Source: Tubulanus polymorphus | Lineage: Eukaryota; Animalia; Nemertea | Length of the DNA stretch: 64,000 bases | Direction: 5' to 3' | Assembly: GCF_964204645.1 (NCBI RefSeq) | Contig: NW_027437473.1 | Location: 1 to 64,000 of the forward strand | In this document: positions 18,201 to 59,876 of the stretch, one piece after another | Layout of the letters: every line of letters starts with the position of its first letter | Position numbering within the stretch: position 1 is the stretch's first letter | The notes under the pieces: model-generated | The model's database searches: none | What the model was told of the DNA's origin: nothing | What the model saw: only the letters and a program-made list of their open reading frames with translations | Translations under genes and position numbers: made by a program

Positions 18201-19030
18201 TTTTAGAGCCCATACCTCACCATTATTTAAGTCTGCAAAAATTCTTAAATTGGCAGATATAAACAATTTTCAAATTGGACAATTCATGTATCTATATGTC
18301 AATAACAAGTTACCTGAGATGTTCAATAATTTTTTTAAGACGAATGACGTTGGATACAACACTAGAAACAGCAACAACATCCGCCCTGACTCATTCAAAT
18401 CAAATCTAAAAGGTTTCTCAATAAAAGTCAACGGTCCAAATATTTGGAATATTATGAATGATTCAATTAAAAACTCCCCTTCTAATGAAAGTTTCAAAAA
18501 TCGAACAAAAAACCATTTACTTTCTCATTATTAATCGTTACAGTTTATTCATGAAAATAATAATAATGATAATTATGTATAAGGTGCAATGACCTTCTCA
18601 AATGGTACTTACTTACGCTCATATGATGTATGTATAACCTTGGAATAAACTCCAAGGTATAACTTTATGTATTTATATGTATACATTTTTGTGTGTGTGT
18701 GTGTGTCTATTTGTAAATGTGTGTGAATATATGTGTGTGGTTTTCTTATATGTGGTGGGTGTTTTGGTGTGTGCGTGTGTGCTGCTTGCTTGCGAGTGTG
18801 TGTGCGTGTGTGTGTGTTTGTGTGTATCGTGCGTATTTCATCTCTATTTGTTCCTTTTGGGGTGCCTGATATTACAAGCTCTGCTTTCCTCTGGTTGCCC
18901 TGCTGTTATTTTACATCAGTTTATATATATTTTGTATGAACCAAATTAATCATCTATTGTAATTTTGTCTGGTATCTATTTATTGATGTAAATTATTCAG
19001 GAAATAAATAAATAATAAATAAATAATAAT
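15222..19030 (+). mobile_element. Non-LTR retrotransposon (CR1/L2-like group LINE), apparently recent
   Basis: Intact APE-RT ORF, GT-rich 3' UTR and (AAAT)n tail at about 19003-19030. The flanks join to give the empty site seen at about 31740-31780. Confidence 0.85.
15598..18534 (+). CDS. LINE ORF2: apurinic-like endonuclease plus reverse transcriptase (978 aa)
   Basis: EN motifs HLNIRS, FTETW, GGG, IYRPP, GDFN, IDNI, SDHFP. RT motifs YRPISILP, QFGFR, FLDLSRAFDTV, GVPQGSILGP, FADD, FLGV. Confidence 0.95.
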   Translation: MASHAHPEFIVGSSSKYYKDLTQLSKFGLSNFSLFHLNIRSFNKNFENLQLYLHSLCFNFGILAFTETWTKLQHDNKSMYNLPDYESIFISRQDTRGGGIAMFVHNTIKFRILDDFTCVNDTFESLFIEIQLPHNMSKHIVGTIYRPPDASVNNFNTDFLPLLENLTRTGRKCFILGDFNINLFNADSHKPTGDFIFNMLSTGFTNLIDKSTRVTDRSSTLIDNIYSNCYSSFDAISGILIYDISDHFPIFAIMPEIKVNHTSTRTVSYRKMSDHDIARFKRKLIAHDWTHVFNIHDANVAYNSFYDVFYKYYTECFPIINRKFSIYRDKKHGWFSNGLLISLKKKDSLYRRYLSSKLQTDRDIYNRYRNVFNTCIKKAKTLHYNSMLNNARDPKETWKIINDLINRKSSNSKYPDVFEQNGVMYKNNVSIANEFNKCFAQAGPNLANDILPTNKTFFSFLGPPQQNNIFFSPTDSLEIENIVSKFKNSNNTGHDGINQKILKRVIDAISRPLAHILNLSLINGQVPESFKISKILPLFKSGDVSHFSNYRPISILPCISKILEKVVYKRVISFLDKYKILSPCQFGFRKDHSTNMAITVIIDKIINNLDNGKSTIGIFLDLSRAFDTVNHEILLSKLCHYGIRGTPLLWFRNYLSNRFQTVLFKETTSTSYPVFCGVPQGSILGPILFLLYINDLANASSIFNLIMFADDANVFTSHININELTIIVNTELHKLNIWFRANRLSLNLKKTHFMFFSRAKHKHSISIKINNMSISQVSTTKFLGVQVDDQLTWKSHINSICTKLSRFIGIMGRLYGILSKTTLLQLYYSFIYCHLTYCNIVWGNTYPSNLRKLELLQKKAVRIIFKTDFRAHTSPLFKSAKILKLADINNFQIGQFMYLYVNNKLPEMFNNFFKTNDVGYNTRNSNNIRPDSFKSNLKGFSIKVNGPNIWNIMNDSIKNSPSNESFKNRTKNHLLSHY

Positions 19031-25385: not shown

Positions 25386-25520
25386 CGAGATTCTCAGCAG
25401 GTCTGTCGATAGTTTGTGTATCTCCCTGGTAAACATTCATCGTATTATTGTCACCGATTTGAACCATTTTCGATTGATTTACATTTATTCCTGGATTACT
25501 CTGTGCCATAGTACCACAAA
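25386..25520 (-). CDS. NLR1 N-terminal cassette exon carrying a canonical RHIM
   Basis: cag|...CTCG|gtaatt, 135 nt, phase 1-1. Encodes (V)CGTMAQSNPGINVNQSKMVQIGDNNTMNVYQGDTQTIDRPAENL. Confidence 0.85.
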
Positions 25521-26021: not shown

Positions 26022-26165
26022 CGAGATTCTCAGCAGGTCTGGTGCTGGCTTGTGTAACTGCGGGGATAATTTGAGTCACTGTCGTCGTATTATTGTCACC
26101 CCTTACACTTAAGTTAGAATTGTCTGCATTTATTCCTGGATTACTCTCCGCCATAGTACCGTTTA
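26022..26165 (-). CDS. NLR1 upstream cassette exon (degenerate RHIM-like); probable start ATG at 26154
   Basis: 144 nt, phase 1-1, same splice context. Encodes (V)NGTMAESNPGINADNSNLSVRGDNNTTTVTQIIPAVTQASTRPAENL, with Kozak-like ACTATGG. The spliced model gives 987 aa. Confidence 0.75.
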
Positions 26166-31809: not shown

Positions 31810-34523
31810 CTATATCTGTATTTCTACTCTCAGTCTTTTATTGAGTTTTTTAAGTTCTGATTTGATGTAATCTCTCGTCGTATAGCGGTCGGTGCTCCAG
31901 CAGAGGATATACAGGTCAGAAAGATGCGGAAGATTATTGATTAATTCGACGATTAATTTGACGAATAAATCGATATCGTGCTGTGTATTAATCGGCGCGA
32001 TTGGTGAACGGTGAAACTCTAAATAACGAATTGATGAGACGTGTTTTAGTTGTTTAAAGATACGATTGTTCTGTACCGGTCTATCGGGATAGCTATAAAT
32101 ACGGACTTGTCGCAGCTGATTTACCGCATCTGACGATAGATACCGAACAAGTGCGTCAACATCAGCTTCTGACCGCAACACTATTCCTAATACAGTCAGC
32201 CGCGGCAGGTGATCTAGAACGCGGTGTTTTTGTAAATTAAATCCGTTAATGACAAGACGTTTTAGTTTCGGCATTGAACCGACACTATCACTCATTGCTG
32301 CACATTCATCTGTCGTTAGTCCGAGCCGTCCGAGCTGAATTGTTTCGATGTGTGAAGATTTTATCGTGTTGTTTAAATCATTCCATTCCTCCGAACCGAT
32401 CAAATTCTTATCGAATATTAATCCACTAAGACATAAGGTTTTCAAACTCGGAATGATGTTTATCAGCCCTCTGATTGTATTTCTATCGAGCTGATATTCC
32501 CACAGAGATCTGAGAGATAGATGTTTTATGGATGGATACGATTTGTGAATATTGACTAAAATATAACCTAAACGTTCCGCACTAACACGAGGATCAATAA
32601 ACAGACTCTCCACTGTATTGTGTGTGTTAGTATCAACACTGATCAACCGCGCGTCATCTTCAGTGTTAATCACGTGACTTGTAATAATCCATTCATTATT
32701 GAGTTTCTTGTAACATTCACCAGGGTCTAATCCACCTCGCTCCACAAACCAGTTTATACTGTTGCTCTTCTGACACATAGTCAAGAACTGATCGCGTATT
32801 GATGACCTGTATGTAACTAATATCATACCGTGAAGACTAGTGTTACTCGTTATGGCTGTTTCTAATACGCGGCATTCGTCGGGTTCCAGTTCCTTATAAC
32901 TGTGAATAATGTAAACTAGCTCGATCTGACATTGTTTGTGTTCGAGTATTTTTGCGAGCATGTTTATCCACGATCTGCTATATACAGATACGAACAACAT
33001 TTTCTGCATGTAGGGAACTATTTCACTAATGGCGTCGTCCGGCCAGTCGGCTTCATCCATGCAGATTGACAACTGTTCAGATAAAACAGTTCTTTCGGAT
33101 CGGAGTTCGAAGTAGCGTTCGTAATCGGGAATGAGCGCCATCTCCCTAGTAACCATATCCAAGGAATCGTACGTCATACTATCCGCTATTGTGACTGCTT
33201 TTAAATGTTCATCTATTAAAGTCTTGAAAAGTTCACCGAGGCCGCGGTTATACTTGTAACGATACAGCAGCCCTGACATGAATCTCGGGTATAATTCACC
33301 ATATTTCACAAGTTCGTCCTGTAGTTGTTCAAACGCGCATTTATTCCAGGGTATTTCACCGCTGTTGTTGAATTGCACGACCGAGTGTACCGCCGCCAGA
33401 AATTCGTGCACAGATTTGTGTATGAACCGTAGCTGGACGGAGCGGTCTGATCTCCGTCGCGGCGACACCTCTTTACACGTCAAAGCCGTCCTTTTCGATT
33501 CGTCGAGTTCAAGACGACTTTCGGTGAAGCTGTTTTGATGCTTGATGAGCGTCTCATACGCGACTTGACAAATTTCTTTAAGCGCTTCGGAATTTCCGAT
33601 ATTGCGGAAAAAACATTCCTTCGACAACTCGAGGCCCTCGCGTTTACTGATCAGAAAACATGTCAAATCGATGTAGATATCGGTGAGTTTTGATGGTATC
33701 ATAATTTCTTCCTTGTCCATATACAGAAAACAAAACATATGTAGTATCAGCGGGTTGTAGTAGATACTTTCAAATAAAGGTGACGCTGCGGCTTTAAGCT
33801 TGTCGAATAGCTGTTCTGGATTGGGGAATTTTCTCTTCATAATATCGATGACTTCTTTCTGTTTGAAGCCGGATATCGATACAACAGTGAATTTGGGATC
33901 AGTGACGATCATGCTGCCCCCGGACTCACGTGTTGTTACGACGATATGCGCTTTCGGTAATTTATTGGTCACGTGTACGATGTATTCCTTCGCTTTATCG
34001 CTTTTTAACTCGTCGAAGCCGTCTAGAAAAAATATCGATTTTTCTGCATTTTCCCGTAAGAATCTCTTAAAACCAATCGGCAAATGCTCTTCGATTTCTC
34101 GACTCAAAAGATCTTCGTAAATGTACTTATAAATACACGCGTTATCAGCGGGCAGTTCATTTAACGGTATATAGAATAACATAGGAAATCTTTTCAGAAA
34201 CGGTGATCGCTCCCATGACAACACTTGATTAACTACCTGAGTTGTTTTACCCATACCGGGTTCACCTACGAGGCACACGCGTTTCATAGCACGCTCGTCA
34301 TAAGTGAAAAGCTTCTCGAAATGATCGGGTAAAATCACTGGCTGCTCCTCACTTCCTTCATTTTTCTTCGGGTTTCGTTTTCGGGGTCGAATTTTCGCGT
34401 GTTCTCGGGTGAAGAAGTCGTTGAAATTGACGAATTCATCGCTCCACGAAACCTCTTTGTAATTTTCATCATCGATCATTCGTTTATACGTTTCTTTCAG
34501 GCTCTTCCGAACTTGATCAACAT
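31810..34523 (-). CDS. NLR2 large exon: NACHT plus LRR
   Basis: Same NACHT motifs (GEPGMGKTT, LDGFDE, FIHKSVHEFLAA). Phase-1 acceptor with the exon beginning at 34523. Confidence 0.92.
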
Positions 34524-37500: not shown

Positions 37501-38683
37501 TCATCTAAATTACCTTTATAATCTAAAACTGTATTGAATATTTTAGGATTTCTGGAGCCATTATGGAAAGTATCTATTAGTTCAGTAATTAAATATGTTT
37601 CATTTAATAATATTTGATTAATTACAGTAATATTATCAATTTTATTTCGTCTTCCATAAACTAAATTTGTTGCTGAGATATAATTTTCAATGTTTAACAA
37701 TCGAGGAATTCATGCCTGAAATGTGGCTATAAAAACTGATCGTATGTTTACTAGATTTTGAGTAGGTGTCAGTCACAAGTTCTTCCAATAGCAATAAATA
37801 TGTATGAACTGGCTGCCTGTCAGCCATCTTGATTGTGAACAGGGACAATCCGAAATAACTGGATTCCATCTATGGACGAACGGGCAAAAAGTGAAATCAA
37901 CAGCCAACTGGGACTAAAGTCCCAACTGGGCTTAAACAATCGTACGCCACCTGGTGGATAGAATGTCTTGATATAATTTTCTATTATTTTAGTTAAAGAT
38001 TTAGAACGATCTTTAGAGACATGGTCAAAGACTTCGGACCCGTCTTATGATTTAGGATCACATTTGGACTCAAGCACGAGTTCTGATGGTAGAAATCTAT
38101 AATTACCAATTGATATTGTGCAACTCGATACTAACGACTATAGCCGCGATCACGGGGAGACGATTTGACCCGGGCTGCAAAATTGGTACGGATCAGGTCC
38201 GAGTCAAATTGGCCTTAGAGATTGCATTCACACGCAAACCTCTCACTTGATACTAAACAAAACGAAGTGAGTCACTACCGGAACCAGTTGACCCGCACCT
38301 GGTCCGACGTTTTTGGTCAAATTGGGCCCAGGTCCATTTTGAATTATAGGGTTAGGATTGAAACGTGATAGTATCTGATCACGGTAACTTTCACTCTTAT
38401 TTTACTGTTAACAGTATTTATACTGTTAATCTGTTTTTATTCCTACTCGAGACTGATAAACAAACTGTGTCACCAGATGTGATAAGAGACCATAATTCAA
38501 AATACCGATTATAGAACCTGACCCTGACTGTTTTAGTCAAAGATTTAAAACAATCGGGTTGGTGGACAATATATTACTTTCGCCTCAAAACTTTACACCG
38601 GATTTATATACGAGATCACATTTAGACTCAAGTCACATCATTCTGTACTGAACTGAACTCCGATGGTTAAAATCTATAATTAC

Positions 38684-38779
38684 CGAGATTCTCAGCAGGT
38701 CTATCGACGGTTTGCTCCTCGTCATCGCGAACATTTTCTGCATTTATTCCTGGATTACTCTGTGCCAAAGCACCACAAA
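38684..38779 (-). CDS. NLR2 cassette exon 6 (RHIM-less acidic type)
   Basis: 96 nt, AG/GT, phase 1-1; (V)CGALAQSNPGINAENVRDDEEQTVDRPAENL. Confidence 0.7.
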
Positions 38780-39815
38780 CTGAAAAACAGGATTTAGAAT
38801 TCAGTCATTTTATCTCAACAAGTGCAGCACATTTTTCCTGACCTAATTGTTTTGTCCAGTATTTACACAATCAGCCTCTACTCATATTCAGACTGAAGTT
38901 TTCTTTGTTTCCGCTACTGATAAAGGATAATGGAATGTAGGAAAAAAATGGCCGAGGAAAATTTATGAGAACTACTGACAATGTTAATAAAACATTAAGC
39001 CTTCAAATTAATGACATCATATATTTTTCATGGGGCTTAAAACAATTAAAATCGGTATTAATGAGATCAGAAATTTGATTAACTTACATTTCATTTCATT
39101 ACAGGATTGCTACATTGGAGAGTCATTGAATCCTATGTCTGAACTCAACTAACCCATGATGAGTTCACTCCTACATGTAGCAATCCTCCACCTAATATCA
39201 ATTATATCTGATATTGTGCAACTCGATACTAACGACTATAGCCGCGATCGCGGGGAGACGTTTTGACCCGGGCTGCAAAATTGGTACGGATCAGGTCCGA
39301 GTCAAATTGGCCTTAGAGATTGCATTCACACGCAAACCTCTCACTTAATACTAAACAAAGCGAAGTGAGTCACTACCGGAACCAGTTGACCCGCACCTGG
39401 TCCGACGTTTTTGGTCGGGCCAAATTGGGCCCAGGCCCATTTTGAATTATAGGGTTAGGATTGAAACGTGATAGTATCTGATCACGGTAACTTTCACTCT
39501 TATTTTACTGTTAACAGTATTTATACTGTTAATCTGTTTTTATTCCTACTCGAGACTGATAAACAAACTGTGTCACCAGATGTGATAAGAGACCATAATT
39601 CAAAATACCGATTATATAACCAGACCCTGACAGTATTAGTCAAAGATTTAAAACAATCGGGTTGGTGGGTCCATTTTGGTACTCAGAATCTTTAAAGACA
39701 ATATATTACTTTCGCCTCAAAACTTTACACCGGATTTATATGCGAGATCACATTTAGACTCAAGTCACATCATTCTGTACTGAACTGAACTCTGATGGTT
39801 AAAATCTATAATTAC

Positions 39816-39953
39816 CGAGATTCTCAGCAGGTCTGTCGCTGGCTTGAGTAACTGCGTGGATAATTTGATTCACTGTATTATTGTCACCGATTATACTTAA
39901 ATTAGAATTGTCTGCATTTATTCCTGGATTACTCGCCGCCATAGTAACGTTTA
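39816..39953 (-). CDS. NLR2 cassette exon 5 (RHIM-like variant)
   Basis: 138 nt, phase 1-1; (V)NVTMAASNPGINADNSNLSIIGDNNTVNQIIHAVTQASDRPAENL. Confidence 0.72.
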
Positions 39954-40287
39954 CTGAAAAACAGAATTTAGAATTCAGTCATTATATCTCAACAAGTGCA
40001 GCACAGTTTTCCTGAAAGAAATATGCTGGTTGGCCAAATTGTAAATTAGTACATATCACATGCAGAAGACCAGATAACAATGATAAAAGCTTACTATAAT
40101 ACAAGTGTAGCAACCCAATCTCAATAATTACAATAATGAAATGTATGAATTTGTGAGCAGTATTCGCCTGTTAATAATAAGACATAAACTACATGAAACA
40201 CATTCTAGCCACAAATATTACCAGTCTCGCTAGCCATATACTCATTCTGTACTGAACTGAACTTTGATGGTTAAAATCTATAATTAC

Positions 40288-40383
40288 CGAGATTCTCAGC
40301 AGGTCTATCGACGGTTTGCTCCTCGTCATCGCGAACATTTTCTGCATTTATTCCTGGATTACTCTGTGCCATAGTACCCAGTA
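40288..40383 (-). CDS. NLR2 cassette exon 4 (acidic type)
   Basis: 96 nt, phase 1-1; (V)LGTMAQSNPGINAENVRDDEEQTVDRPAENL. Confidence 0.68.
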
Positions 40384-41227
40384 CTGAAAAACAGGATTTA
40401 GAATTCAGTCATTTCATCTCAACAAGTGCAGCACATTTTTCCTGACCTAATTGTTGTGTCCAGTATTTACACAATCAGCCTCTACTCATATTCAGACTGA
40501 AATTTTCTTTGTTTCCGCTACTGATAAAGGATAATAGACTAAACTTCAACATCTCCATCACAAGTTCGCATTTGGAACGTTAGATAATTTGACCTCCTTA
40601 GAGATTTCCGGCGACGTTACAAAACACAGTTGAAATTGTTTATTAGGTTTTTATCGTGTGAAAAACGCATTCAGATAACGCGCCAGGGACGGTCATCGAC
40701 TGAGATATCAAATCACAAGCCACAACAGGTCGCCATCCGCAAATCACTGACTTTATTTTCTAAAAATGCCTGAAGAATACTGTCTTAATTTGCTGGATTA
40801 GTTTTAAAGAGGCGCACACTCGACAATCTGACATCGAAATGTAACCAGCATTGGTTTCTTTCAAGGATTTTACGTAGAAAAAAAACTGTGTCAACGAGAA
40901 GACTTGTATCTTCTAAATCACTGAATACTGTTTTAACCTGCCGGAGGAAGGGGCGCATACTCGACAGTCTTACATTGGAATGAATGTAATTAGGATCAGT
41001 TTTTTCTTTCATGGATTTTAATGTAAAAAATAAATGATTCTAAAAGTTGATTTCATTGACATTCATTACGCAGGAAGGGAAGCTGCTTTGTTAAAGTCAG
41101 GCATAAACGTGTGACTCAGTCACACGTCTCAAAACTTTACACCAGTTTTATATACGAGATCACATTTAGACTCAAGTCACATCATTCTGTACTGAACTGA
41201 ACTCCGATGATTAAAATCTATAATTAC

Positions 41228-41323
41228 CGAGATTCTCAGCAGGTCTATCGACGGTTTGCTCCTCGTCATCGCGAACATTTTCTGCATTCATTCCTGGATT
41301 ACTCTGTACCAAAGCACCACAAA
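41228..41323 (-). CDS. NLR2 cassette exon 3 (acidic type)
   Basis: 96 nt, phase 1-1; (V)CGALVQSNPGMNAENVRDDEEQTVDRPAENL. Confidence 0.68.
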
Positions 41324-42325
41324 CTGAAAAACAGGATTTAGAATTCAGTCATTTTATCTCAACAAGTGCAGCACATTTTTCCTGACCTAATTGTTTTGTC
41401 CAGTATTTACACAATCAGCCTCTACTCATATTCAGACTGAAGTTTTCTTTGTTTCCGCTACTGATAAAGGATAATGGAATGTAGGAAAAAAATGGCCGAG
41501 GAAAATTTATGAGAACTACTGACAATGTTAATAAAACATTAAGCCTTCAAATTAATGACATCATATATTTTTCATGGGGCTTAAAACAATTAAAATCGGT
41601 ATTAATGAGATCAGAAATTTGATTAACTTACATTTCATTTCATTACAGGATTGCTACATTGGAGAGTCATTGAATCCTATGTCTGAACTCAACTAACCCA
41701 TGATGAGTTCACTCCTACATGTAGCAATCCTCCACCTAATATCAATTATATCTGATATTGTGCAACTCGATACTAACGACTATAGCCGCGATCACGGGGA
41801 GACGATTTGACCCGGGCGGCAAAATTGGTACGGATCAGGTCCGAGTCAAATTGGCCTTAGAGATTGCATTCACACGCAAACCTCTCACTTGATACTAAAC
41901 AAAGCGAAGTGAGTCACTACCGGAACCAGTTGACCCGCACCTGGTCCGACGTTTTTGGTCAAATTGGGCCCAGGTCCATTTTGAATTATAGGGTTAGGAT
42001 TGAAACGTGATAGTATCTGATCACGGTAACTTTCACTCTTATTTTACTGTTAACAGTATTTATACTGTTAATCTGTTTTTATTCCTACTCGAGACTGATA
42101 AACAAACTGTGTCACCAGATGTGATAAGAGACCATAATTCAAAATACCGATTATAGAACCTGACCCTGACTGTTTTAGTCAAAGATTTAAAACAATCGGG
42201 TTGGTGGACAATATATTACTTTCGCCTCAAAACTTTACACCGGATTTATATACGAGATCACATTTAGACTCAAGTCACATCATTCTGTACTGAACTGAAC
42301 TCCGATGGTTAAAATCTATAATTAC

Positions 42326-42421
42326 CGAGATTCTCAGCAGGTCTATCGACGGTTTGCTCCTCGTCATCGCGAACATTTTCTGCATTTATTCCTGGATTAC
42401 TCTGTGCCATAGTACCCAGTA
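42326..42421 (-). CDS. NLR2 cassette exon 2 (acidic type)
   Basis: 96 nt, phase 1-1; (V)LGTMAQSNPGINAENVRDDEEQTVDRPAENL. Confidence 0.68.
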
Positions 42422-43286
42422 CTGAAAAACAGGATTTAGAATTCAGTCATTTTATCTCAACAAGTGCAGCACATTTTTCCTGACCTAATTGTTGTGTCCA
42501 GTATTTACACAATCAGCCTCTACTCATATTCAGACTGAAATTTTCTGTTTCCGCTACTGATAAAGGATAATAGACTAAACTTCAACATCTCCATCACAAG
42601 TTCGCATTTGGAACGTTAGATAATTTGACCTCCTTAGAGATTTCCGGCGACGTTACAAAACACAGTTGAAATTGTTTATTAGGTTTTTATCGTGTGAAAA
42701 ACGCATTCAGATAACGCGCCGGGGTCGGTCATCGACTGAGATATCAAATCACAAGCCACAACAGGTCGCCATCCGCAAATCACTGACTTTATTTTCTAAA
42801 AATGCCTGAAGAATACTGTCTTAATTTGCTGGATTAGTTTTAAAGAGGCGCACACTCGACAATCTGACATCGAAATGTAACCAGCATCGGTTTCTTTCAA
42901 GGATTTTACGTAGAAAAAAAACTGTGTCAGCAAAAGACAGACTTATGTTAGATGTTGCAACGAGAAGACTTGTATCTTCTAAATCACTGAATACTGTTTT
43001 AACCTGCCGGAGGAAGGGGCGCATACTCGACAGTCTTACATTGGAATGAATGTAATTAGGATCAGTTTTTTCTTTCATGGATTTTAATGTAAAAAATAAA
43101 TGATTCTAAAAGTTGATTTCATTGACATTCATTGCGCAGGAAGGGAAGCTGCTTTGTTAAAGTCAGGCATAAACGTGTGACTCAGTCACACATCTCAAAA
43201 CTTTTCTCTGGTTTTATATACGAGATCACATTTTGACTCGAGTCACATCATTCTGTACTGAACTGAACTCTGATCTCAATAATTAC

Positions 43287-43382
43287 CGAGATTCTCAGCA
43301 GGTCTATCGACGGTTTGCTCCTGGTCATCGCGAACATTTTCTGCATTTATTCCTGGATTACTCTCCGCCATAGTAACGTTTA
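43287..43382 (-). CDS. NLR2 cassette exon 1 (acidic type); probable start ATG at 43371
   Basis: 96 nt, phase 1-1; (V)NVTMAESNPGINAENVRDDQEQTVDRPAENL with ACTATGG context. The all-exon model gives 1106 aa. Confidence 0.65.
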
Positions 43383-44221
43383 CTGAAAAACAACATTTAG
43401 AATTCTTCAGTCATTTCATCTCAATTTAAGTGCAGCACATTTTTCCTGACCTAATTGTTTGTAATACATCTATAAACAAGTTGACTATCCATTGTCAACT
43501 GCTGTTGCTGGCGCGGTAACTATCTCTAAATATTGGAATCGTCGGTCGATTTAGAAATATCAAATTAGAAACAATGGACCCTGTACGGCGTGGAATCAGA
43601 AATTGTCTTTACTGTTAAATAATCTCTGCATGACTAACAAAGATACATTCTTTTTGCGACAGCCGACCGAACTAACCGACAATGCGCCTAGAAATTATGA
43701 CTCGAAGAATGATAAATTTATGTCGTTTTGTGTCGGAGACCTGGTATAAAATACATCAAGCTCCTAACCTTGTATTGTGTAGTTACTCCATAATTCTGTA
43801 GTGACGTAATAAGAGGGATGGGAATCGTTTAAAATAATAATTGCGAGTGAATGAACTACATGTATTATATATTACACGATAAAGATATCTATCACTGATG
43901 TCAGAAAATCTCGTTAAAATTATCATTAACTCTGAAACGCTGAGATCTAAGTTTACCACCAACGATTATGTAAACTCATACATTATCAATTTCGCCCTTG
44001 TGATGCAAAAGTTTAAGAGTTCTACTTTTTTGCACTTTTTTGTTGTTTAGATATAAAAGGATGTAAGGTTTTAACCTGATAAACTCTAGATATAAAACTA
44101 GTCTCATTCTGTGTTATGAACCGACGCCCCCCTCCCCCCCTAATCAGAATCGCGTTCTGTTCAAACACAATTCCGCATTCACTAAATTGACTAGAATATT
44201 TCTACAGTAAATTAAAGATAT

Positions 44222-45852
44222 TTAGGCCAAAAAAAAAATTATGTTTCTGGTCAGGCCCTTCTGCACAAAATGATGTGTTTAAAAAAAATCCTACTTTGAC
44301 TATCGAGTGTGATGGATTAGTCGACAGGAACAAGTCCAAACGCACGTACAGTAGCCGGCCCTTGCAAAATTGATATCTTTTGGTTTTTATTCACTATCAG
44401 ACGAGCTCAGACCACTATTCCAAAATCTTCTATATCCTATAATAAAAACAAGAAATTCGAGAGTTTAGTTCATATATAAGCGCGTAAATTCAGGGGAAAT
44501 CCTGCTTATGGCTCATAGGCCAGCATCTTAGCTACGCATTGAAGTGGTTTTCGCCCCACATATCCAACCTAACTTTTGAAATAATCAAACCTTTAGAAAG
44601 GAGGGGTATCCCAGTACAGGTATGCCAGTACATCCGAGCCAAATATCTAAGGGAATCCCCCACCGTGTTTGGTACCCTTACTCCAAGCAAAAAAAGTCCA
44701 GGGAATCCCTTATTTCATCATCGATCTGTCTCTTTCTCAGGATCAATGCAGGGGCGTAGCCACAAATATTACCGGACATATGTCGCACCAATGATTGAAA
44801 AACCCATTATGCTAAAACGTCATAATAAACGTTATTCTGTATTTACATTGGGGGGGGGGGGTATCAAGTTCTTTTGAAGATGTCAGTGGTGCTAATACAG
44901 AGGCGTTGGTAATGAGATTTTCGGTGTAGGCCACATCCAACCCAGTGACTCCAGCGAGTTTTGTTTATAAGTGTTTACGGTATCACATCTGGACCATGAA
45001 CCTGATCTCACAGTATCAAAGTTGCCGAATTCAGATCCAGCCTACCACTTGTATCGAGGGGTACTCAGGTTTGCCCTTCTAGTTTTCTAGTTCGTGATTT
45101 TGACAGGCTCTTGTACTAACATGAATGTTTTATTGCGGGCAAGTATTCTGGAAGTAGTATAGAAACTTCAAGGGAGATAGACTTTAAGCCCCAAATATGC
45201 TTAAAGATTGCATCTTAGAACCTTGAAAAATCAAAATTTTCTGGGGAGTGCCCCCAGGTCCCCCGTTTTGTGCTATAACCTTGAGATAACCTTGGCTTAG
45301 AGGCATTGATTATATTATCTACAGAAAAATTATTCAAATATGAGCTCTCAGCCATCAGAACGCATCTCAGACGTTTTAATGTTCAAAATTTTCTTGGGGG
45401 AGGGCCCCAAACCCCCCTACAAGACATCGCGATGTGCGCTCCCGATTGTCGCGCCATTTTGAATTTAGGTGGCTACGCCCCTGCCTGCAATGGAATTCAT
45501 TATAAGATAACCGAAATTCGTTTTCTATCCCATTCGCAGAAATTATTGCAATATTTATCGGGGACCTCTTCTTCACTCTAGGTACTATTTTTAGGCCAAT
45601 TGTGGTCTGATACCGGACAATAGCAATGAATATTTGGACTCATATGAACCTGTTTCGTTTGACTGCTTCTGCGTGAACACTTCTACGGTTTTACTTCCGC
45701 GTTTGAGCGCATCGCTCACTAGATGGCGCTAGCGCACGGTGCGCGAATTTCGGAGCCGATTTTCTTTCCGAAAAAACAAATTCCGACGGGGGTTCTAGAT
45801 CGACCGCGCGCGCTGACCAGAAACAGCTGAATGCAATTTTTGTTTGCCCTTA
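44222..45852. mobile_element. Putative non-autonomous TIR DNA element
   Basis: Left end taggccaaaaa...tgtttctggtcag and right end ctgaccagaaaca...tttgtttgccctta are imperfect inverted repeats. The termini resemble those of the 13665-13882 MITE. Confidence 0.45.
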
Positions 45853-46379: not shown

Positions 46380-47345
46380 TAATTAATAACTAAGTGAGTG
46401 AGTAGATAATTAATTAATTAAGGAACAACAAACTAAAACAAATCAAAGAGAAATAAATCAAAATGAAACTATATCAAAGTAAAATAAACAGATGGTATCT
46501 AAGAGCAACGAATAACAAGAAATGGAAGTCCGGTTACAATGAATAACAAACGAAATTAGGTTCTGTATCGGGACATGAATCCTAGATCGCGATTGAGGCC
46601 AAGATTAACAGGATCACCGCGTTGAATAAGTTTTTGTTCCATGATTTCGCGCGATTGTTTATTAGAAGTGTTCATTTTATGTAACGCGGTCACTTTAAGG
46701 TTACTGATGGTGTTGTTCGGAAGATTGAAATGTTCGCCGATAGGTTTATCCATTTTCTTGTGTCTGATATCAAATTTGTGACCATTTAAGCGTTGACGTA
46801 ATGTTTGTCCAGTTTCTCCGATGTAGATGGTTCCAGGGCTAAACAACGTTGGTGGAGTCGCATGTGCAGGGTTCAGTGACTTTGAGTTGTTGGTTGTTGG
46901 TTGCGGTGACGGTCGGTGATGAGTTGATGAGAGGGCAGAGTTGACATCTAGATTTATTGCAGGGGCTCGTGTATTTGTTATCTGAGTCTTCTACGGTGGA
47001 TAGTTTGCTGCTGATGAGGAGTTTTCTAAGGTTAGCTGGTTTGCGGTACGCGATGACTGGTCTCAGTGGTAGTATGTCGCGTAGATTATTCGACTATGGG
47101 TTGGAGATCTGATATGATTCGTTGGATTCTGCGCAGGCGCGGACTGTAGGTGACTGCGATGGGGATTCGCTCAGTTTCTCTAGACGTTGCGGATTGGAGT
47201 GTTGTTTCTCTGGGTATGTGAGTAGCGCGAGTGATTTGTTGGTCGATGATTTCAGGGTTGTACTGGAGTTGGTGGAACGCATTTTTCAGTTGTTGAATGT
47301 GTTGGTCGCGGTCTTGAGTGTTGGAGCAGAACATTTTCTTCTCAC
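46380..47345 (-). mobile_element. Penelope-like retroelement relic (RT C-terminus plus GIY-YIG endonuclease)
   Basis: IYIGETGQTLRQRLNGH...PIGEHFN (GIY-YIG) in 46556..46846, and CSNTQDRDQHIQQLKNAF...YNP (PLE post-RT region) in 47086..47358. Frameshifted and 5'-truncated. Confidence 0.85.
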
Positions 47346-48367
47346 AGCATCGGCCCAAAAAATGCCTTTTTTCGTTTTACTTTTCATGCCTTTTAAATTG
47401 GATATGGTGCCGCCCCGTTAACTGTCACGGGGACCTAGGGTTGACCAGTAACAGTGCCCTTTTTCATGAGATCATCCGGAATTTGGGCCCTTTGAAACAA
47501 ATTGTCATCGTATAATAGGCCCATACAAAGTGTGCTTTTATTTGTCCTTTTTACTTTATGTTCCCTTTTCATTGGATATGGTGCCCTTTTTATCTGTGTT
47601 CACCAATCGTCTCGGGGTTGATTTTGTTTTCACAGAAATCTAATGCTTTGATTTTAAAAGGGTATTTTGGAAATTCGTATCCTTCCTTCCGGAAGGCATG
47701 GAAGGTAAGCTGGATGCGACCCTGATCCGCACGAATCATGAATTCAACTCAGATGCGGATTGGTCGACGACCTTTTCTTGGTTACATCGTTCTCATGTCT
47801 GTGATAAACGGGTCTGGAATCTACTGTACTGTGTCACTGGTCTGCTTGTCTTGTTCACGTTAGGAGCGTTCCTGATAGCGATAAGTCGCAGATTCCGCAG
47901 TTTACCTCACGCTATCTATCCGATCGCTTTGTGTCTCAGTGATTCCTTGCACTTTATCAAATTAACACTGATGCCTGTTTAACAGTTCGTTCTCTTTCGC
48001 GATAAAGGCGTTCCTATATTCATCACGAATTCACTGATCAGTTGTCAAATATATGATCTGTGATGTCACTTGCAGGCTGTAATAGTTAATCGAGACTCGG
48101 AGCCACGGCACGAAATTTGCGGCGCTCAGATTGTTCGAATGCGTCGATTTTATTTCGGGGCCGTAGTTTTAGGTGTACAATCAAAGAGAGTTGACAAATT
48201 TGCAAACAACACAAACACCTGAATACGGACCACGTTACGCCCCCTAGTGGACGATAAAGTATATAGCGAACAGAGAAAAGAGGTCAGAAGATTATGTTGT
48301 ATCCACTTTTTATACGATTAGAATTCAATTCCTTTAGGAATTAGCGAAATATCGGAAAAAAAACATC

Positions 48368-48492
48368 TTAGTTAGGACAACAAACTCCCAAGAAGGCAGT
48401 GCAACATCTGGTGTCGCAACAACCACCAAACCAATATGTGCCGGTTTTCCCATGACATTGACACGGAGTTCCTCTCTTTTCAATCTGAATTT
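48368..48492 (-). CDS. Secreted cysteine-rich peptide, last exon (propeptide end, KR, 34-aa mature peptide); APETx/BDS defensin-fold-like
   Basis: tttacag|AA ATT CAG ATT GAA AAG AGA GGA ACT CCG TGT... reads (E)IQIEKR GTPCQCHGKTGTYWFGGCCDTRCCTAFLGVCCPN*. The phase-1 acceptor matches the upstream exon. Confidence 0.8.
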
Positions 48493-48558
48493 CTGTAAAT
48501 AGATTGATCTATATTGATTTAACTTGTAAGCAAAATATAAACTCGTGTTTTAAAAAAC

Positions 48559-48644
48559 CTAACGAAATAACTTCAGTTGCCGCGACAGAAGCTCCAACGA
48601 CCATAAACAAGGCCAAGGCGATGAACAGAGTTTTAGTAAACAAT
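48559..48644 (-). CDS. Signal-peptide exon of the cysteine-rich peptide gene
   Basis: ttcag|A TTG TTT ACT AAA... reads LFTKTLFIALALFMVVGASVAATEVISL, then G|gt, with a 66-nt intron to the next exon. The expected ATG reads TTG. Confidence 0.7.
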
Positions 48645-49147
48645 CTGAAAGTGAATTTGAAATGTTGAAAATAGCCACTGAGATATAACACTGTAACAGT
48701 TACTAGAATGGTCGATTTAATCCTTTCGTTATTCGCACTTAATTCGCAAATTTTTACCGTCAAAAAAGTGAAAATATTGTAAACAGATAAAATGGGTACT
48801 TGTTCCTTATTGGAACGGAATGTTTAATATAAGAAACGAGTAACTTACTTAACTGCGGTTTTGTTTTGGTGACAAATCACGGATTTATACGAGAAATTCA
48901 CAAGCTGGAATAGAAACAAATAAATCCGAGATATTTGGACTGATTTCCAGCAGTCATCAAAAATATTCAATACATCTCTAATTGATCATAAAACCTAGCA
49001 AAATTTAACAGAATCAAATACACAATCCTACAAATAGAAATAAGTTTTGATATTTCAAAAATATTTTATCATTTCTCTCTAGAAACAGCAACAAAATATC
49101 AGATCAATGTTGACTCGATGATTCAACAGCATCAAAATTGAACTTAC

Positions 49148-49204
49148 CTTCGAATACAAACGATTCCAAGTCGATGATATGTTGATGAAACTGATTGGTT
49201 TATA
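49148..49204 (-). promoter_or_regulatory. TATA box and short non-coding first exon of the peptide gene
   Basis: TATAAA at 49204-49199 (minus) and a strong donor GAAG|gtaagtt at 49148/49147. AATAAA lies at 48154-48149, downstream of the stop. Confidence 0.55.
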
Positions 49205-49304
49205 TTGACTGTGTCCGCACCACCCGCCTCTCATCTCAAACTGGGTGAAATTATCAAAGCAGAAATTTACAATCGATCCTTTTTTGTCGAATCAGAAATT
49301 GAAA

Positions 49305-52300
49305 AAGTGAATAAAATCACGGGTTTTCTGATATTTTGAACTCCTCGTGATTTGAACTGGAAATCAGAAGTGTTTTTAATTTTTCAGGGATTTGAAACTG
49401 TGTTCGATGTTTGAACTGTTTATCTTGTAAATTAAATAAACTCATCTCCTTCCAATTAAATACATAAAAACATCCAATAATAAATTTTCTTTGACAAAAA
49501 ATGTGGAACTCTGGATTTTGTGTTTCACACTCAACGCTACAGAATAAATTCGATATCTTCCGATACAGATTCAATGACCTTCAGTAGAAAATGAGAAACA
49601 TCTCGTGAAATGTGTCAAAATGTCCACGTGACGCGTGGGTCCCATCGAAACCGGTTTCATCTAGTTTACATTACGCATATTTCGTACCAATTTGCCAATC
49701 ATCGACGAGTATGACTAATTATGCGTCCTATCATTAATGAGGATGTTTTGGAAGGTGGACCCGGTTTTAGCGGCAAACTCAATTATTCAATTTTCAAATT
49801 AAATCATTTTGCTATTAGAGATGTGTGATTTATACCGATATATACTTCATGCAGTTCAGAATGGATTGATATCTTCACTAGAGTCACCGCGCAGTTTATA
49901 GAGCGAAGATGGATTATGACCAGTGACCCCAATAGTTAGATAATAATATGAAATATGAAGCTTCATTGTGTTCGACAATTCTTGTCGTTCGCGCAGATTA
50001 TTACATCTGGGTGTCTTGTATATGTTCGCACCTGGAGGTTATCGCGATGGTGTATGGTTTACCAGTCTGGACAGTGAGGTGCTCAAACTGTCTCCCGTAA
50101 ACAATTAGACACCTCTTGTGAACATATTACGATTTATTCTGAATGTTATCTCGCTGAAACGAAAGATAAACCGTTCTCAAAAACTGAGCCGTTACTGGAA
50201 ATTCAATGGAATTTGAATGTTTTCTTGTTCAGGATTTATTTGGAATGAAATCGCGCTCAAACTAGTTCCGGATTGATATAAACTGTGCTCAATAAACTGA
50301 ACTTTTATCAAAAAACACAAGGATTCAAATTGACTCAAGGATAATCATTCATACATTACACACACAAGATTGGATAAACTGTAAGTTAGAAAAAACATTA
50401 ACAGCTGAAATTATGTTTTATAGGTTTAGTTAGTTATTAGGAACTTACTCGGTGAGTTAGTAAGTTAAAGAAATGCATGAAAATTAGTACAATTTCCAAC
50501 GAAATGTGTAAGTTTAAGTAAAGGAATTTGGGTGCTATTTGCAACAGGGTCCTGTGGAGTCTCTGGGTCTCTGGTCTTGCAGATAGAGAAAGCTGTTTGT
50601 TCATTTCGATGCCTAATATCTTTATTTTCACTAACGGTTTCACTAATGTCTCTGTCGGTCAAATAGATAAATAACAGGTTAGCCTGGCTGTATTGCGCAA
50701 TGTTGAATTCAGTTGTACATGTATCATCATCAGGGTGACCGAAACCGGTTCTGTCCAGTTCAGGTCATCATTAGCTATGCGCGCCACTTGACCAATCAGA
50801 ATTACTTATTGCGCCCCGCATCAATTATGTGGCCAATCGCCGGCCGCGATGACCAGCCGCGCACGAGCCGAGTGCAAGGCGAGCAAGGAACCCGCTTCAT
50901 TAGAATCCGTCACAATCGCGGTTTAATTTACATCATAGAACACGAAATTAAACGATAAAAAAACAATTCAGAAACGATAAAACTGATACGGATAAGATGA
51001 ACGCGATTGTTAGGTGAGTTTGTCGAGATTTCCGCATCGCAAATTTCTAGATATTTACGTGAAAAAGTAAGTTGATTTTCACACGTGTGAAACCCAGCAA
51101 TGTAAACGGCATATAAACTTCTACTCGTTACTTATAGACTATTCAGATACAAGGGTAGATGCAGGATTAATTTGCAGGGGGGGGGGCAACATACGTGGGG
51201 TACCTTTTCGATTACAAGGGGCACTCCCCCCCCCCCCGTAAAGCGAGTGCAGTGAGGCGCGAAGCTGTGAGGGGTTTTTGCCCGGGAAATGAATTTATCG
51301 GTATTTCGACTATGGTTGTTTGAATTTCTTCTTTGTTTTATTTTTCAGGCTTCACGGAACTTGGAATCGATTCAATCGAAGTTCAATTTAAATCAGGATT
51401 ATTGCGATATTACAACAAACTGCGCTCATAACAAACTGTGAACTATTATAAAAAACACGAGGATAAAAACTGACTATAATTCTGAGGATCCCTGGATTCA
51501 TACATTACACACATGATTGGATAAACTGTGAGTTAGAAAAACATTAACAGCTGAAATTATGTTTTATAGGTTAAGTTAGTTATTAGGAACTTACTCTGTG
51601 AGTTAGTAAGTTTTTAGAAAGGCATGAAAATTAGTACAATTTCCAACGAAATGTGTTAGTTAAAGTAAAGAAATTTGGGTGCTATTTGTATCAGGGTCCA
51701 GTGGAGTCTCTGGGTCTCTGGTCTTGCAGATAGAGAAAGCAGTTTGTTTATTTCGATGCCTAATATATTTATTTCAGGATCCTGTATTTTACGCTTCTAT
51801 TTCCAGGGTTTCTCTCTATTTTCAGGTGTTTTCCTTTTATTTCAGAATTTCCGTTTTTTCTAATCTTTTGTTTTATAAGAAAACGACTTTCATGTAAAAA
51901 CGTTTAGTTGAAATAAAAATGACAATTTCAGGGTCATCGCTGAGACAAGACCCCAGAAGACTAGGCCACAGAGTACGTGTCTTCACCCCCAGCACACAAC
52001 AGAGTGGCCCGATTCAGGTGCGGCCTGTATGTTCTATTTCAGTGTGAAGAACAAGACCCCCTAGTCACAGAAGATTGAATCTGAAGTTGAATGATGATGA
52101 CAGAGTGACTGAAGAATTCCGGTGTGACCTGTATAACATGTCTCTATTTCAGTATCCCCCTCCCTAACCCCTAAACCCGAGCCCGAATAGGTAGGCCGAA
52201 TATATAGGTTAGGTTAGAATAGTTAGTTGATAGATCTTTGAATTAGAACATAATTTCAGCTGTTTATATAAAATACAGTTGTTATTTCAAGTGGAACTTT

Positions 52301-57006: not shown

Positions 57007-59876
57007 TTAATCAGATTCATCTGATGAATCAGATGAATCAGATGAATCTGATAATACAGATGCTGGGTAGTAAACCCCTATTATTACTCTCAGTCTTTTA
57101 TTGAGTTTTTTAAGTTCTGATATGATGTAATCTCTCGTCGTATCGGGGTCGGTGCTCCAGCAGCGGATATACAGGTCAGAAAGATGCGGAAGATTATTGA
57201 TTAATTCGACGATTAATTTGCCGAATAAATCGATATCGTGCTGTGTATTAATCAGCGCGAGTAAACCGTGAAACTTTAAACAACGAATTGATGAGACGTG
57301 TTTTAGTTGTTTAAAGATGCGATTGTTCTGTTCCGGTCTATCGAGACGGCTATCAATACGGACTTGTATCAGCTGATTTACCGCATCTGTTGATAGATAC
57401 CGAACAAGTGCGTCAACATCAGCTTCTGAACACAACACTATTTCTAATACAGTCAGCCGCGGCAGGTGATCTAGAACGCGGTGTTTTGGTAAATTAGATC
57501 CGTTAATGACAAGACGTTTTAGTTTCTGCATTGAACCGACACTATCACTCATTGCTGCACATTGATCTGTCGTTAGTTCGCGCAGTTCGCTCAGTTCGAG
57601 CAGTTCGCGCAGTTCGCGCAGTCCGCGCAGTCCGCGCAGTCCGCGCACTCCGAGCTGAATTGTTTCGATGTCTGACGATTTTATCGTGTTGTTTAAATCA
57701 TTCAATTCCTCCGAACCGATCAAATCTTTATCGAATATTACTCCAAAAAGACATAAGGTTTTCAAACTCGGAATGATGTTTATCAGCCCTCTGATTGTAT
57801 TTCTATCGAGCTGATATTCCCACAGCGATCTGAGATATAGATGTTTTATGGATGGATACGATTCGTGAATATTGACTAAAATATAACCTAAACGTTCCGC
57901 ACATATACGAGGATCAATAATCAGACTCTCCACTGTATTGTGTGTGTTAGTATCAACACTGATCAACCGCGCGTCATATTCAGTGTTAATCTCGTGACTT
58001 GTAATAATCCATTCATTATTGAGTTTCTTGTAACATTCACAAATGTCGTCGAGGTATCTACCTCGCCGCACAAACCAGTTTATACTGTTGCTCTTCTTAC
58101 ACATAGTCAAACACTGATCGGGTTTTGATGACCCGTATGTATCTAATATCATACCGTGAAGACTAGTGTTACTCGCTATGGCTGTTTCTAATACGCGGTA
58201 TTCGTCGGGTTTCAGTATCATATAACCCTTTATGTAAACTAGCTCGATCTGACATTGTTTGTGTTCGAGTATTTTTGCGAGCATGTTTATCCACGATCTG
58301 CTATAATATGCAGATACGAACAACATTTTCTGCATGTAGTGAACTATTTCACAAATGGCGTCGTCCGGCCAGTCGGCTTCATTCATGCAGATTAACAACT
58401 GATCAGATAAAACAGTTCTTTCGGATCGGAGTTCGATGTAGCGTTCGTAATCGGGGATGAGCGCCATATCTGCCGATTCCCTAGTAACCGTAACCAAGGA
58501 CTCTAACCTATCCACTATTGTGACTGCTTTTAAATGTTCATCTATTAAAGTCTTGAAAAGTTCACCGAGGCCGCGGTTATACTTGTAACGATACAGCAGC
58601 CCTGCCATGAATCTCGGGTATAATTCACCATATTTCACAAGTTCGTCCGGTAGTTGTTCAAACGCGCATTTATTCCAGGGTGTTTTCCAGGGTATTTCAT
58701 TACTGTTGTTGAATTGTACGACCGAGTGTACCGCCGCCAGAAATTCGTGCACAGATTTGTGTATGAACCGCAGCTGGACGGAGCGGTCTGATTTCCGTCG
58801 CGGCGACACCTCTTTGCATGTCAAAGCCGTCCTTTTCGATTCGTCGAGTTCAAGACGACTTTCGGTGAAGCTGTTTTGATGCTCGATGAGCGTCTCATAC
58901 GCGACTTGACAAATTTCTTTAAGCGCTTCGGAATTTCCGATATTGCGGAAAAAACATTCCTTCGACAACTCGAGGCCCTCGCGTTTACTGATTAGAAAAC
59001 ATGTCAAATCGATGTAGATATCGGTGAGTTTTGATGGTATCGTAATTTCTTCCTCGTCCATATACAGATAACGAAACATAAGTAGTATCAGCGGGTTGTA
59101 GTAGATACTGTTAAATAAAGGTGACGCTGCGTATCTAAGCTTGTCGAATAGCTGATATGGATCGCGCTTGGGGAATTTTCTCTCCAGAATTTCGATGACT
59201 TCTTTCTGTTTGAAGCCGGATATCGATACAACAGTGAATTTGGGATCAGTGACGATCATGCTGCCCCCGGACTCACGTGTTGTTATGACGATATGCGCTT
59301 TCGGTAATTCATTGGTCACGTGTACGATGTCTTTCTTCGCTTTATCACTTTTCAACTCGTCGAAGCCGTCTAGAAAAAATATCGATTTTTCTGCATTTTC
59401 CCGTAAGAATCTCTCAAAACCAATCAGCAGATTCTCTTCGATTACTCGATATAAAAGATTTTTGTAAATGTACTTATAAATACACGCGTTATCAGCGGGC
59501 AGTTCATTTAACGGTATATAGAATAACATAGGAAACTTTGCTACAAACTCCGTTGTTGATGTTGTCCAGGTTAACACTTGATTAACTACCTGAGTAGTTT
59601 TACCCATACCGGGTTCACCTACAAGGCACACGGGTTTCACATCACTCTCTTTATAAGTGAAAAGTTTCTCGAAATGATCGGGTAAAATCAATGACTGCTC
59701 CTCACTTCCTTCATTTTTCTTCGGGTTTCGTTTTTGGGCTCGAATTTTCGCGTTTTCTTGGGTGAAGAAGTCGTTTAAATTGGTGACTTCATCGCTCCAC
59801 GAAACCTCTTTGTAATTTTCATCATCGATCATTCGTTGATACGTTTCTTTCAGGTTCTTCTGAACTTGATCAACAT
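57007..59876 (-). CDS. NLR3 large exon: NACHT plus LRR, with an acidic Ser/Asp tail
   Basis: Same NACHT motifs; phase-1 acceptor with the exon beginning at 59876. The ORF-track start at 59940 is probably intronic read-through. Confidence 0.92.

Follow-up and report, generated by a model that had tools for sequence, protein, structure and literature searches.

Six short homologous exons stand in a row in front of NLR2, a NACHT-LRR (leucine-rich repeat) gene of the ribbon worm Tubulanus polymorphus (Nemertea), and the locus raises the question of whether such an array varies the N-terminus of an NLR (nucleotide-binding, leucine-rich repeat) receptor or records the recombination that made it. 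The window analysed here is the whole stretch of 64,000 nt, positions 1 to 64,000 of contig NW_027437473.1, which is the first 64 kb of an unplaced 68-kb scaffold of this nemertean (C56 in our numbering; C8, C9 and the like are other sequences of the assembly). The six exons, termed cassettes E1 to E6, lie at 38684-43382 and are kin to exons encoding the RHIM (RIP homotypic interaction motif), an amyloid-type motif. Alignment establishes the anatomy of the array, the descent of its exon types, its mosaic structure and the loss from it of a canonical RHIM exon. The reading which we prefer, with a probability of roughly 55%, is that the array is a recent mosaic of unequal recombination, that the usual job of its acidic exon is to supply a start codon, and that the five copies of this exon and the loss of the RHIM are by-products of instability and no tuned device.

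Anatomy of the NLR2 cassette array

The conserved 3′ flank of the cassettes together with the splice donor (...AGACCTGCTGAGAATCTCG followed by GTAA) was used as a marker, and nine minus-strand copies were found in the window, six of which lie within the array. The original prediction had placed six homologous exons here, five of 96 nt and one of 138 nt, and its coordinates were reproduced (Table 1). The three other cassettes of the window are found at 25386-25520 (135 nt), 26022-26165 (144 nt) and 63448-63582 (135 nt), and as predicted all nine lengths are multiples of 3. Each of the six array cassettes has the acceptor ...ttttcag and the donor gtaattat, and possesses a single open frame, closing a few codons past the acceptor, with 2 nt left over at the front of the exon and 1 nt at the back (phase 1-1). 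The AG/GT borders, symmetric phase and lack of stops that had been read from the sequence are thus confirmed, and with them the skipping of a cassette would keep the frame, as an alternatively spliced cassette exon requires. The flanks SNPG(I/M)NA ... DRPAENL are common to all six, and five have the acidic centre, with DDQEQ in E6 and DDEEQ in the other four.

The cassettes are preceded by a non-coding first exon (E0), the sequence of which has no ATG and, read in the cassette frame, meets a stop (TAA) 8 codons short of its donor. Translation must therefore begin in the first cassette joined to it. After a join of E0 to E6 the start is the ACTATGG of E6, and after a join of E0 to E4 it is a new ATG, E4 having lost the ACTATGG (it reads GCTTTGG) and having changed an ATA to ATG 19 bases further (GMNA), the start in RefSeq isoform X3. 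The in-frame ACTATGG previously counted in six of the nine window cassettes was located in E6, E5, E3, E2 and those at 26022 and 25386.

The open frame of NLR2 (31810-34479, minus strand) has 889 codons and a NACHT domain (PF05729, 59.8 bits). Its exon has the acceptor ...TTTACAG before 34523, and since it starts there in phase 1, in-frame joining is possible for any cassette. The exon is 100% identical to P0001, which is the RefSeq “uncharacterized protein LOC141914657 isoform X3”. The Walker A motif GEPGMGKT is present in P0001, and NLR2 has the order expected of an NLR, namely a NACHT NTPase with Walker A and then a repeat region. The LRR signal is weak and was seen in NLR1 only (PF23598, below cut-off).

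It should be mentioned that the RefSeq isoforms X1 and X3 of LOC141914657, and X1 to X4 of its C8 paralogue LOC141909593, are computed models. Our own exon models were searched singly, exon by exon, and the multi-exon proteins are the stored RefSeq entries P0001 and P0014. Isoform X3 (P0001) has its initial methionine in E4, followed by E3, E2, E1 and the NACHT exon, and begins MNAENV. Isoform X1 (P0014) has the three cassettes of NLR3 first and then enters at E4 (63448 to 41323), leaving out the NLR3 NACHT-LRR exon, the intervening small gene, E0, E6 and E5; this model may represent true read-through or may arise from multi-mapped reads. Isoform X2 is NLR3. RefSeq joins just the four proximal exons (E4 to E1), with E5 and E6 absent from every RefSeq protein. 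Anatomy and RefSeq proteins agree with the earlier picture of coding, symmetric, shuffle-able N-terminal NLR cassettes made by local duplication. As the regularities of the cassettes come from common descent, a chance test is beside the point.

Exon descent and mosaic structure

The cassettes of this family include a V type, in which the RHIM core is kept (VQIG/VQMG), an R type with a degenerate core, to which E2 belongs, and an acidic type, from which ~13 core codons are lost. DNA alignment makes the acidic exon a V- or R-type exon minus its central 39-48 nt, pairing ENVRDDEEQTVDRP with MNVYQGDTQTIDRP when the acidic exon is set against a V/R exon with the core deleted. Beyond the gap, what is left (NVRDDEEQTVDRP) aligns with the stretch that follows the core in the V-type exon (NVYQGDTQTIDRP), from which it follows that the acidic type is a RHIM exon that has lost its core and turned acidic. 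The cassettes agree with RHIM-positive exons in flanks, splice sites and phase. The three types previously described for the array have to be revised in both directions: the array itself has two, and the family as a whole has more than three, since further cassettes of 156 and 159 nt with the same flanks and a centre reading ...EIDQISSTNK...THEY... are present on C6 and C32 (L006:5894-6049 (+) and L012:5246-5404 (-)).

The Pfam RHIM model (PF12721, curated cut-off 20 bits) matches the V-type exon at 25386 with 22.0 bits (core VQIGDNN), which served as the positive control, and three of the six V-type exons in all. At E<=10 it has no match in E2 or in the acidic exon, and it matches none of the seven R-type exons. 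Kinship of E2 with the RHIM exon at 25386 is nevertheless clear from an identity of 62% (E 1.7e-7). The description of E2 as RHIM-like therefore stands with respect to kinship and falls with respect to the Pfam model. Its core reads SIIG-DNN versus VQIG-DNN, with the Q missing and a polar first position, and the RHIM tetrad (I/V)-Q-(I/V/L)-G followed by x-x-N is absent from it; from the acidic exons the whole core is gone. The other R-type exons read SVRG, SISG, RKSG or SVSG at this position, with the best conservation further on (...AVTQAS). A profile search of solved-structure sequences with V-type and R-type cassettes gave no RIPK or ZBP1 chain, even with the RHIM-positive V type, and is powerless for a 20-residue motif.

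Each acidic exon encodes 7 acidic and 2 basic residues (net charge -5), and its centre is without a hydrophobic stretch on an aggregation scale that is indicative only. AlphaFold2 in single-sequence mode gave the first 140 residues of P0001 a mean pLDDT of 41 with no confident fold, weak evidence that is compatible with disorder. In NLR3 and in LOC141909594 and LOC141909593 of C8 the acidic exon is the first coding exon, and it opens three arrays on C6; in all six other genes with acidic exons, one of them comes first and supplies the start codon.

Self-comparison of the array revealed three intron types: a (after E6 and E4), b (after E5, E2 and E1) and c (after E3). From 46008 to 41298 there is ~97% colinearity with the NLR3 front, which takes in the promoter region, E0, a pair of acidic exons and both introns. 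This colinearity stops at 41298, 26 nt into E4, and the first 26 nt of E4 match the V-type exon; the break inside the exon makes E4 a chimeric exon. E4 matches at 96 of 96 nt the exon in which coding begins in C8 LOC141909593, a gene relative to which 42047-43797, containing E5 and E6, is an insertion. E5 is identical (96/96) to E3 and to the second exon of NLR3, E6 differs by 1 nt from the NLR3 first coding exon, and the 5′ end of E1 was found at no other locus sampled. Across the five acidic exons positions 21-96 vary at two columns only, with the first 20 nt in three old types, a pattern which would be produced by break points inside the common SNPGINA-coding stretch.

A last intron of 3.7 kb, conserved at 97% among NLR3, NLR1 and the two C8 genes, separates the V-type exon, at whose donor it starts, from the NACHT exon. 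In NLR2 homology to this last intron starts at 38107, where only the G before the donor GTAATTAT is left, and 563 bp of NLR3 (64011-63449, comprising the intron end and the exon) are without a counterpart. The missing 563 bp together with the donor relic show that the canonical RHIM exon of NLR2 was lost by deletion. With this exon deleted and E2 the sole motif-bearing exon, which itself fails the Pfam model, there is little “number and type of amyloid motifs” to vary in NLR2. Cassette number and type do differ between the paralogues, and in RefSeq the isoforms X1 to X4 of LOC141909593 differ by whole cassettes.

An origin by tandem duplication, as originally predicted, is borne out by blocks of 0.3-1.4 kb which are 86-98.4% identical (differing by 1.6-14%), with a copy spacing of 430-2544 bp in the assembly. 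When non-homologous stretches were set aside, the acidic exon (positions 21-96) had no excess conservation over the adjacent intron. The introns of the three paralogous genes are 97-100% identical, and the whole cluster is therefore young. These comparisons make the array a mosaic produced by unequal crossing-over, its break points lying within exons or next to them.

A short high-copy repeat is also present in the b-type introns, at ~39380-39440, 38270-38330 and 41920-41980. Short-read depth at this repeat is 115 versus ~30 beside it, with hundreds of loose ends at 39388-39437. It could help mis-pairing in the array.

The history that we propose is as follows. One ancestral first-coding exon, possessing a start codon in good context and a RHIM-type amyloid motif, would have given all the cassettes of the family. 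The cassettes share ~25 nt of 5′ flank, ~23 nt of 3′ flank and similar intron ends, with which unequal crossing-over or gene conversion would keep reshuffling them in frame. An NLR3-like front (E0-E6-E5) would have been joined to a LOC141909593-like array inside E4, after which further acidic copies (E3 and E1) would have been added and the terminal canonical RHIM exon deleted. At the N-terminus of the predicted NLR2 protein there would be a tail that is disordered and strongly acidic and in which a single R-type motif is present and a canonical RHIM is missing. The amplification would then be a recent, largely unselected by-product of array instability, with most exons probably included constitutively, while signalling by RHIM-like templating would be a property of the V-type cassettes.

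Table 1. Exons of the NLR2 locus and the relic of its lost exon, in window coordinates
Feature	Position	Strand	Remarks
E0, non-coding first exon	44295..44400	(-)	donor at 44295; 5′ end further out, probably near 44440
E6, acidic cassette with ATG (NVTMAES..., DDQEQ variant)	43287..43382	(-)	96 nt
E5, acidic cassette with ATG (LGTMAQ...)	42326..42421	(-)	96 nt
E4, chimeric acidic cassette	41228..41323	(-)	96 nt; in RefSeq X3 and X1
E3, acidic cassette with ATG	40288..40383	(-)	96 nt; in RefSeq X3 and X1
E2, R-type cassette (core ...LSIIGDNNTV..., then QIIHAVTQAS)	39816..39953	(-)	138 nt; in RefSeq X3 and X1
E1, acidic cassette without any ATG	38684..38779	(-)	96 nt; RefSeq joins E1 to NACHT exon
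Relic of lost V-type (canonical RHIM) exon	38100..38107	(-)	last base and donor GTAATTA (G/GTAATTA; donor base 8 at 38099)
NACHT-LRR exon of NLR2	31810..34523	(-)	phase-1 acceptor, frame intact to stop

Transcripts and competing explanations

Four sequencing runs were aligned to 38450-44400. Run X4 is RNA-like, with a depth of 57-217 on exon bins and near zero on most intron bins, and reaches a depth of 72 in the bin containing E0 (44221-44400). Its GT..AG joints connect E0 with an E6-type acceptor (44295 to 43382, depth 42.6) and with an E4-type acceptor (44295 to 41323, depth 46.1). The run also has a join of an acidic donor to an E5/E3-type acceptor and, belonging to C8 LOC141909594, a variant join with RGT.... 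Run X8 (2014, another animal) has a 182-nt contig made of 76 nt of an acidic (GINA) exon and 106 nt of an R-type exon, which may represent either E3 to E2 of NLR2 or the skipping of one cassette in LOC141909594. Three word-based protein searches, using the NACHT exon, the cassette region and the cassette with the NACHT start, returned T. polymorphus RefSeq models only and no transcript-derived fragment. The runs support cassette splicing at the level of the family, and for use of the NLR2 array itself only the computed RefSeq models speak.

Other features of the DNA reads have their origin in paralogues. A DNA joint from 42046 to 43798 in run X1 was considered as a haplotype without E5 and E6 and was rejected as unproven, C8 LOC141909593 having that junction natively. 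The depth of the independent DNA run X5 was similarly discarded as a measure of copy number, its “unique” flank being 94-97% identical to three other loci and offering no single-copy baseline. A DNA join at 43371/43335, which goes back 37, derives from a repeat exon on C9 that is described below.

A number of points weigh against the array being a recent mosaic with no tuned function. The intact frames, the identical splice sites and the compensating ATG of E4 could reflect selection for use. The NACHT-LRR frame of NLR2 is intact and its dN/dS (the ratio of nonsynonymous to synonymous substitution rates) is >1, therefore the gene is not obviously decaying. The three NACHT-LRR exons of the window (19101-21752, 31810-34479 and 57007-59940, minus strand) have a mutual nucleotide identity of 88-97%, below that of the introns before them (97-100%), and pairwise dN/dS values of 1.2-1.6 overall and 1.7-3.0 over the last ~290 codons, which suggests diversifying selection in the repeat end. 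C56 is also an unplaced piece of 68 kb.

The reads bring further difficulties of the same kind. Identical twins of E0, E4, E5/E3 and E6 (E6 but for 1 nt) are present in NLR3 or on C8, with E0 being 99% identical to the NLR3 copy and 99.5% to that of C8 LOC141909593, and there is no NLR2-specific read evidence. With these twins both E0 joins are fully explained by ordinary splicing of the neighbours, and since every join has an identical twin in a paralogue, no RNA join is assignable to NLR2. The joint contigs of run X4 have just 27-29 nt on one side. The own letter of E2 at 39863 (NQIIHAV) is in none of the four runs, all of which read the paralogue letter (NQNIH...), and the run X4 contig at this position carries the C8 LOC141909594 variant; the four runs probably do not include reads from the reference animal. 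Position 39854 was noted together with 39863.

An alternative, contained in the original prediction, is a regulated and tunable N-terminus, in which exon skipping or alternative first coding exons set the number of acidic units before the motif and these units act as spacers or charge brakes on aggregation. We consider this rather unlikely. Its joins of E0 to two different cassette types in run X4 are explained by constitutive splicing in NLR3 and C8 LOC141909593, and its RefSeq support, the cassette-skipping isoforms of LOC141909593 and X1/X3 of LOC141914657, lies in a multi-copy region where isoforms can come from multi-mapped reads. The X8 contig does take an acidic exon directly to an R-type exon, either as E3 to E2 or by exon skipping in LOC141909594; however, no skipped/included pair was shown at the NLR2 locus. 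In its favour are the phase 1-1 of all cassettes, their common donor of moderately low strength, which lacks a G at +5, the replacement ATG gained by E4 and the net -5 of each acidic exon, the sole basis of the spacer or suppressor role. But NLR2 has a single motif-bearing exon, which fails the RHIM model, and the canonical RHIM exon for such a brake to act on is gone. A bolder form of this idea, which we hold to be improbable, has the acidic cassettes as a working, copy-number-variable “charge brake” before amyloid-type motifs, with the cluster setting the nucleation threshold of each receptor by cassette choice, including splicing into the array of the next gene as in isoform X1 (63448 to E4, past a whole NACHT-LRR exon).

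The array may instead be partly dead, with E5 and E6 or the whole N-terminal tail being skipped or untranslated duplicated pseudo-exons and NLR2 a signalling-dead gene on its way out. This we regard as unlikely. E5 and E6 are in no RefSeq protein, X3 beginning in E4, but they have open frames and splice sites the same as those of used exons, and an E0 to E6-type join is seen in the RNA-like data at a depth like that of E0 to E4, though it may come from NLR3. The deletion of the canonical RHIM exon, the absence of the own allele of E2 from all runs and copies conserved no better than their intron flanks would fit such decay, against which the NACHT-LRR frame is intact with its Walker A motif. 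Least probable of all, in our opinion very improbable, is an assembly artefact, be it a falsely expanded or mis-joined repeat or a wrongly stitched haplotype copy of the C8 cluster. Copies that differ by 1.6-14%, with distinct intron types (a, b and c) and break points, would not arise if one set of reads had been duplicated falsely, and the neighbour NLR3 has the same E0-acidic-acidic arrangement. What could be held in its support is that C56 is an unplaced scaffold with gene order and spacers 95-98% identical to C8:100-140 kb, that short-read depth from another animal is patchy (0.1-43 versus ~30 beside the array), and that 59% of the reads placed from that run continue into unlike sequence; the patchy depth is, however, due to a different, 1-5% diverged animal and to multi-copy mapping. 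Read soberly, the NLR2 array records recent recombination and is no demonstrated regulatory device.

The wider family and known systems

Cassette number per gene ranges from 1 (isoforms X1 and X2 of NLR1) to 6 (NLR2). Twelve intact acidic exons were identified genome-wide, five in NLR2, two in NLR3 and one in each of the five other arrays having it. On C9 one exon (L015:5410-6162 (+), equal to G000:C9:3605410-3606162) encodes ten tandem units of 21 residues (MAESNPGINAENAEIVQIGDK), each with an IVQIG-type RHIM tetrad, and a full V-type unit; its GT donor lies ~280 nt before a NACHT-LRR exon (L015:6446-9355). RefSeq P0013 keeps seven of these units and the paralogue P0008 has two. This repeat exon is a second, within-exon mode of expansion of the RHIM module, and across the family the cassette array can, on sequence grounds, be called expandable. 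Word-based and non-exhaustive protein searches found the cassette only in T. polymorphus proteins.

Three near-identical R-type exons are found 2079 bp apart at 19.745 Mb of C1 (L013:2861-2998, 4940-5077 and 7019-7156 (-)), with 3 differences over 2138 bases between two of these units. The 10 kb to each side contain neither a NACHT exon nor an E0, and the open frames close by gave no Pfam domain. The three exons were considered as the motif of a non-NLR partner, for which no domain could be assigned to the surroundings; perhaps they are orphans, or they belong to a gene that is not an NLR.

C56 resembles C8:100-140 kb in gene order and spacers, with non-coding DNA 95-98% identical. As a second haplotype of that region it is not clearly allelic, each C56 gene matching both C8 genes about equally and the NACHT-LRR proteins being just 82-88% identical. 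The spacer between NLR3 and NLR2 (window 47200-52200) is 98% identical over 5 kb to C8:114400-119400, and part of it recurs after NLR1 (7203-8952) and on C32 and C9. The cluster is made up of NLR-plus-spacer units of ~22 kb (~13 kb for NLR2 to NLR1). The C6 RefSeq models P0007 and P0010 have a signal peptide, an Ig-like ectodomain and a transmembrane helix before the same NACHT-LRR body, and may be either membrane-anchored NLRs or annotation fusions of neighbouring genes. Elsewhere in the window there is a LINE-type (long interspersed nuclear element) open frame with endonuclease and reverse-transcriptase domains (15598-18534 (+)) and a 391-codon open frame with repeats matching the C-terminal trimerisation domain of phage T4 gp5 (10966-12141 (-); PF22178, 67.7 bits), the latter an unusual find for an animal.

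No partner with R-type or acidic sequence was found, the extra RHIM matches in the genome being two unrelated open frames only. These are located at C3:26.756 Mb (L016:4417-5685 (-); PF12721 21.7 bits, GVQLGNSNTMTV) and C8:4.552 Mb (L017:4871-5560 (-); 19.4 bits, CVQLGNGNTMEV), with no other domain recognised in either, and they are candidate RHIM-type signalling partners.

NLR signalling of the amyloid type is well worked out in fungi and bacteria. To our knowledge it is known in mammals through RHIM adaptors only, and we know of RHIM-bearing animal NLRs from one sequence survey only. Like the RHIMs of ZBP1, RIPK1, RIPK3 and TRIF (PF12721), the V-type cassette at 25386 scores above cut-off, and its VQIGDNN core is one which we take to be much like that of RIPK3; E2 and the acidic exons, unlike these, have no PF12721 match.

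RHIM-NACHT proteins have been described in amphioxus (Branchiostoma BF82280), as have tandem RHIMs in invertebrate proteins (Kajava et al., 2014; PMC4262963). In the amphioxus proteins the RHIM takes the position of a death-fold domain, N-terminal to a NACHT with repeats, and RHIMs are found two to three in tandem with disordered linkers (PMC4262963), a layout which fits NLR1, NLR3 and the C8 genes. The nemertean motif differs in being a separate symmetric mini-exon, and NLR2 differs in having lost the canonical RHIM and multiplied a RHIM-less derivative. In fungal NWD2/HET-s and in bacterial NLR-associated amyloid motifs, a short N-terminal amyloid motif on a NACHT/STAND receptor templates a partner (PMC4262963); in our reading it is the V-type cassettes that would signal by such templating here.

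The NLR-B30.2 genes of zebrafish have N-terminal peptide repeats of ~30 residues (Howe et al., 2016; PMC4852459). As in the nemertean genes, several units of ~30 residues, one per exon, precede one large NACHT exon, and there are at least two unit types, a variable number per gene and exon shuffling among family members (PMC4852459). The NLR2 array has this same N-terminal repeat-exon organisation, in architecture only; the zebrafish repeats have no known link to RHIM, and FISNA and B30.2 domains are also found in the zebrafish genes.

The T. polymorphus family shows at the level of genes how RHIM modules are built and rebuilt, as the symmetric mini-exon can be copied, exchanged, stripped of its core or, as in one paralogue, expanded to ten repeats inside a single exon. 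These natural variants from one genome make two ideas testable: a signalling threshold set by the number of motifs, and a restraint on nucleation by charged flanks. Already known are the RHIM-NACHT combination from amphioxus (PMC4262963), shuffled exon-encoded NLR repeats from zebrafish (PMC4852459) and the RefSeq gene models themselves. New here are the union of the RHIM-NACHT and exon-repeat themes in a nemertean and, as the alignments indicate, a RHIM-less exon descended from a RHIM exon and multiplied in a gene without its RHIM.

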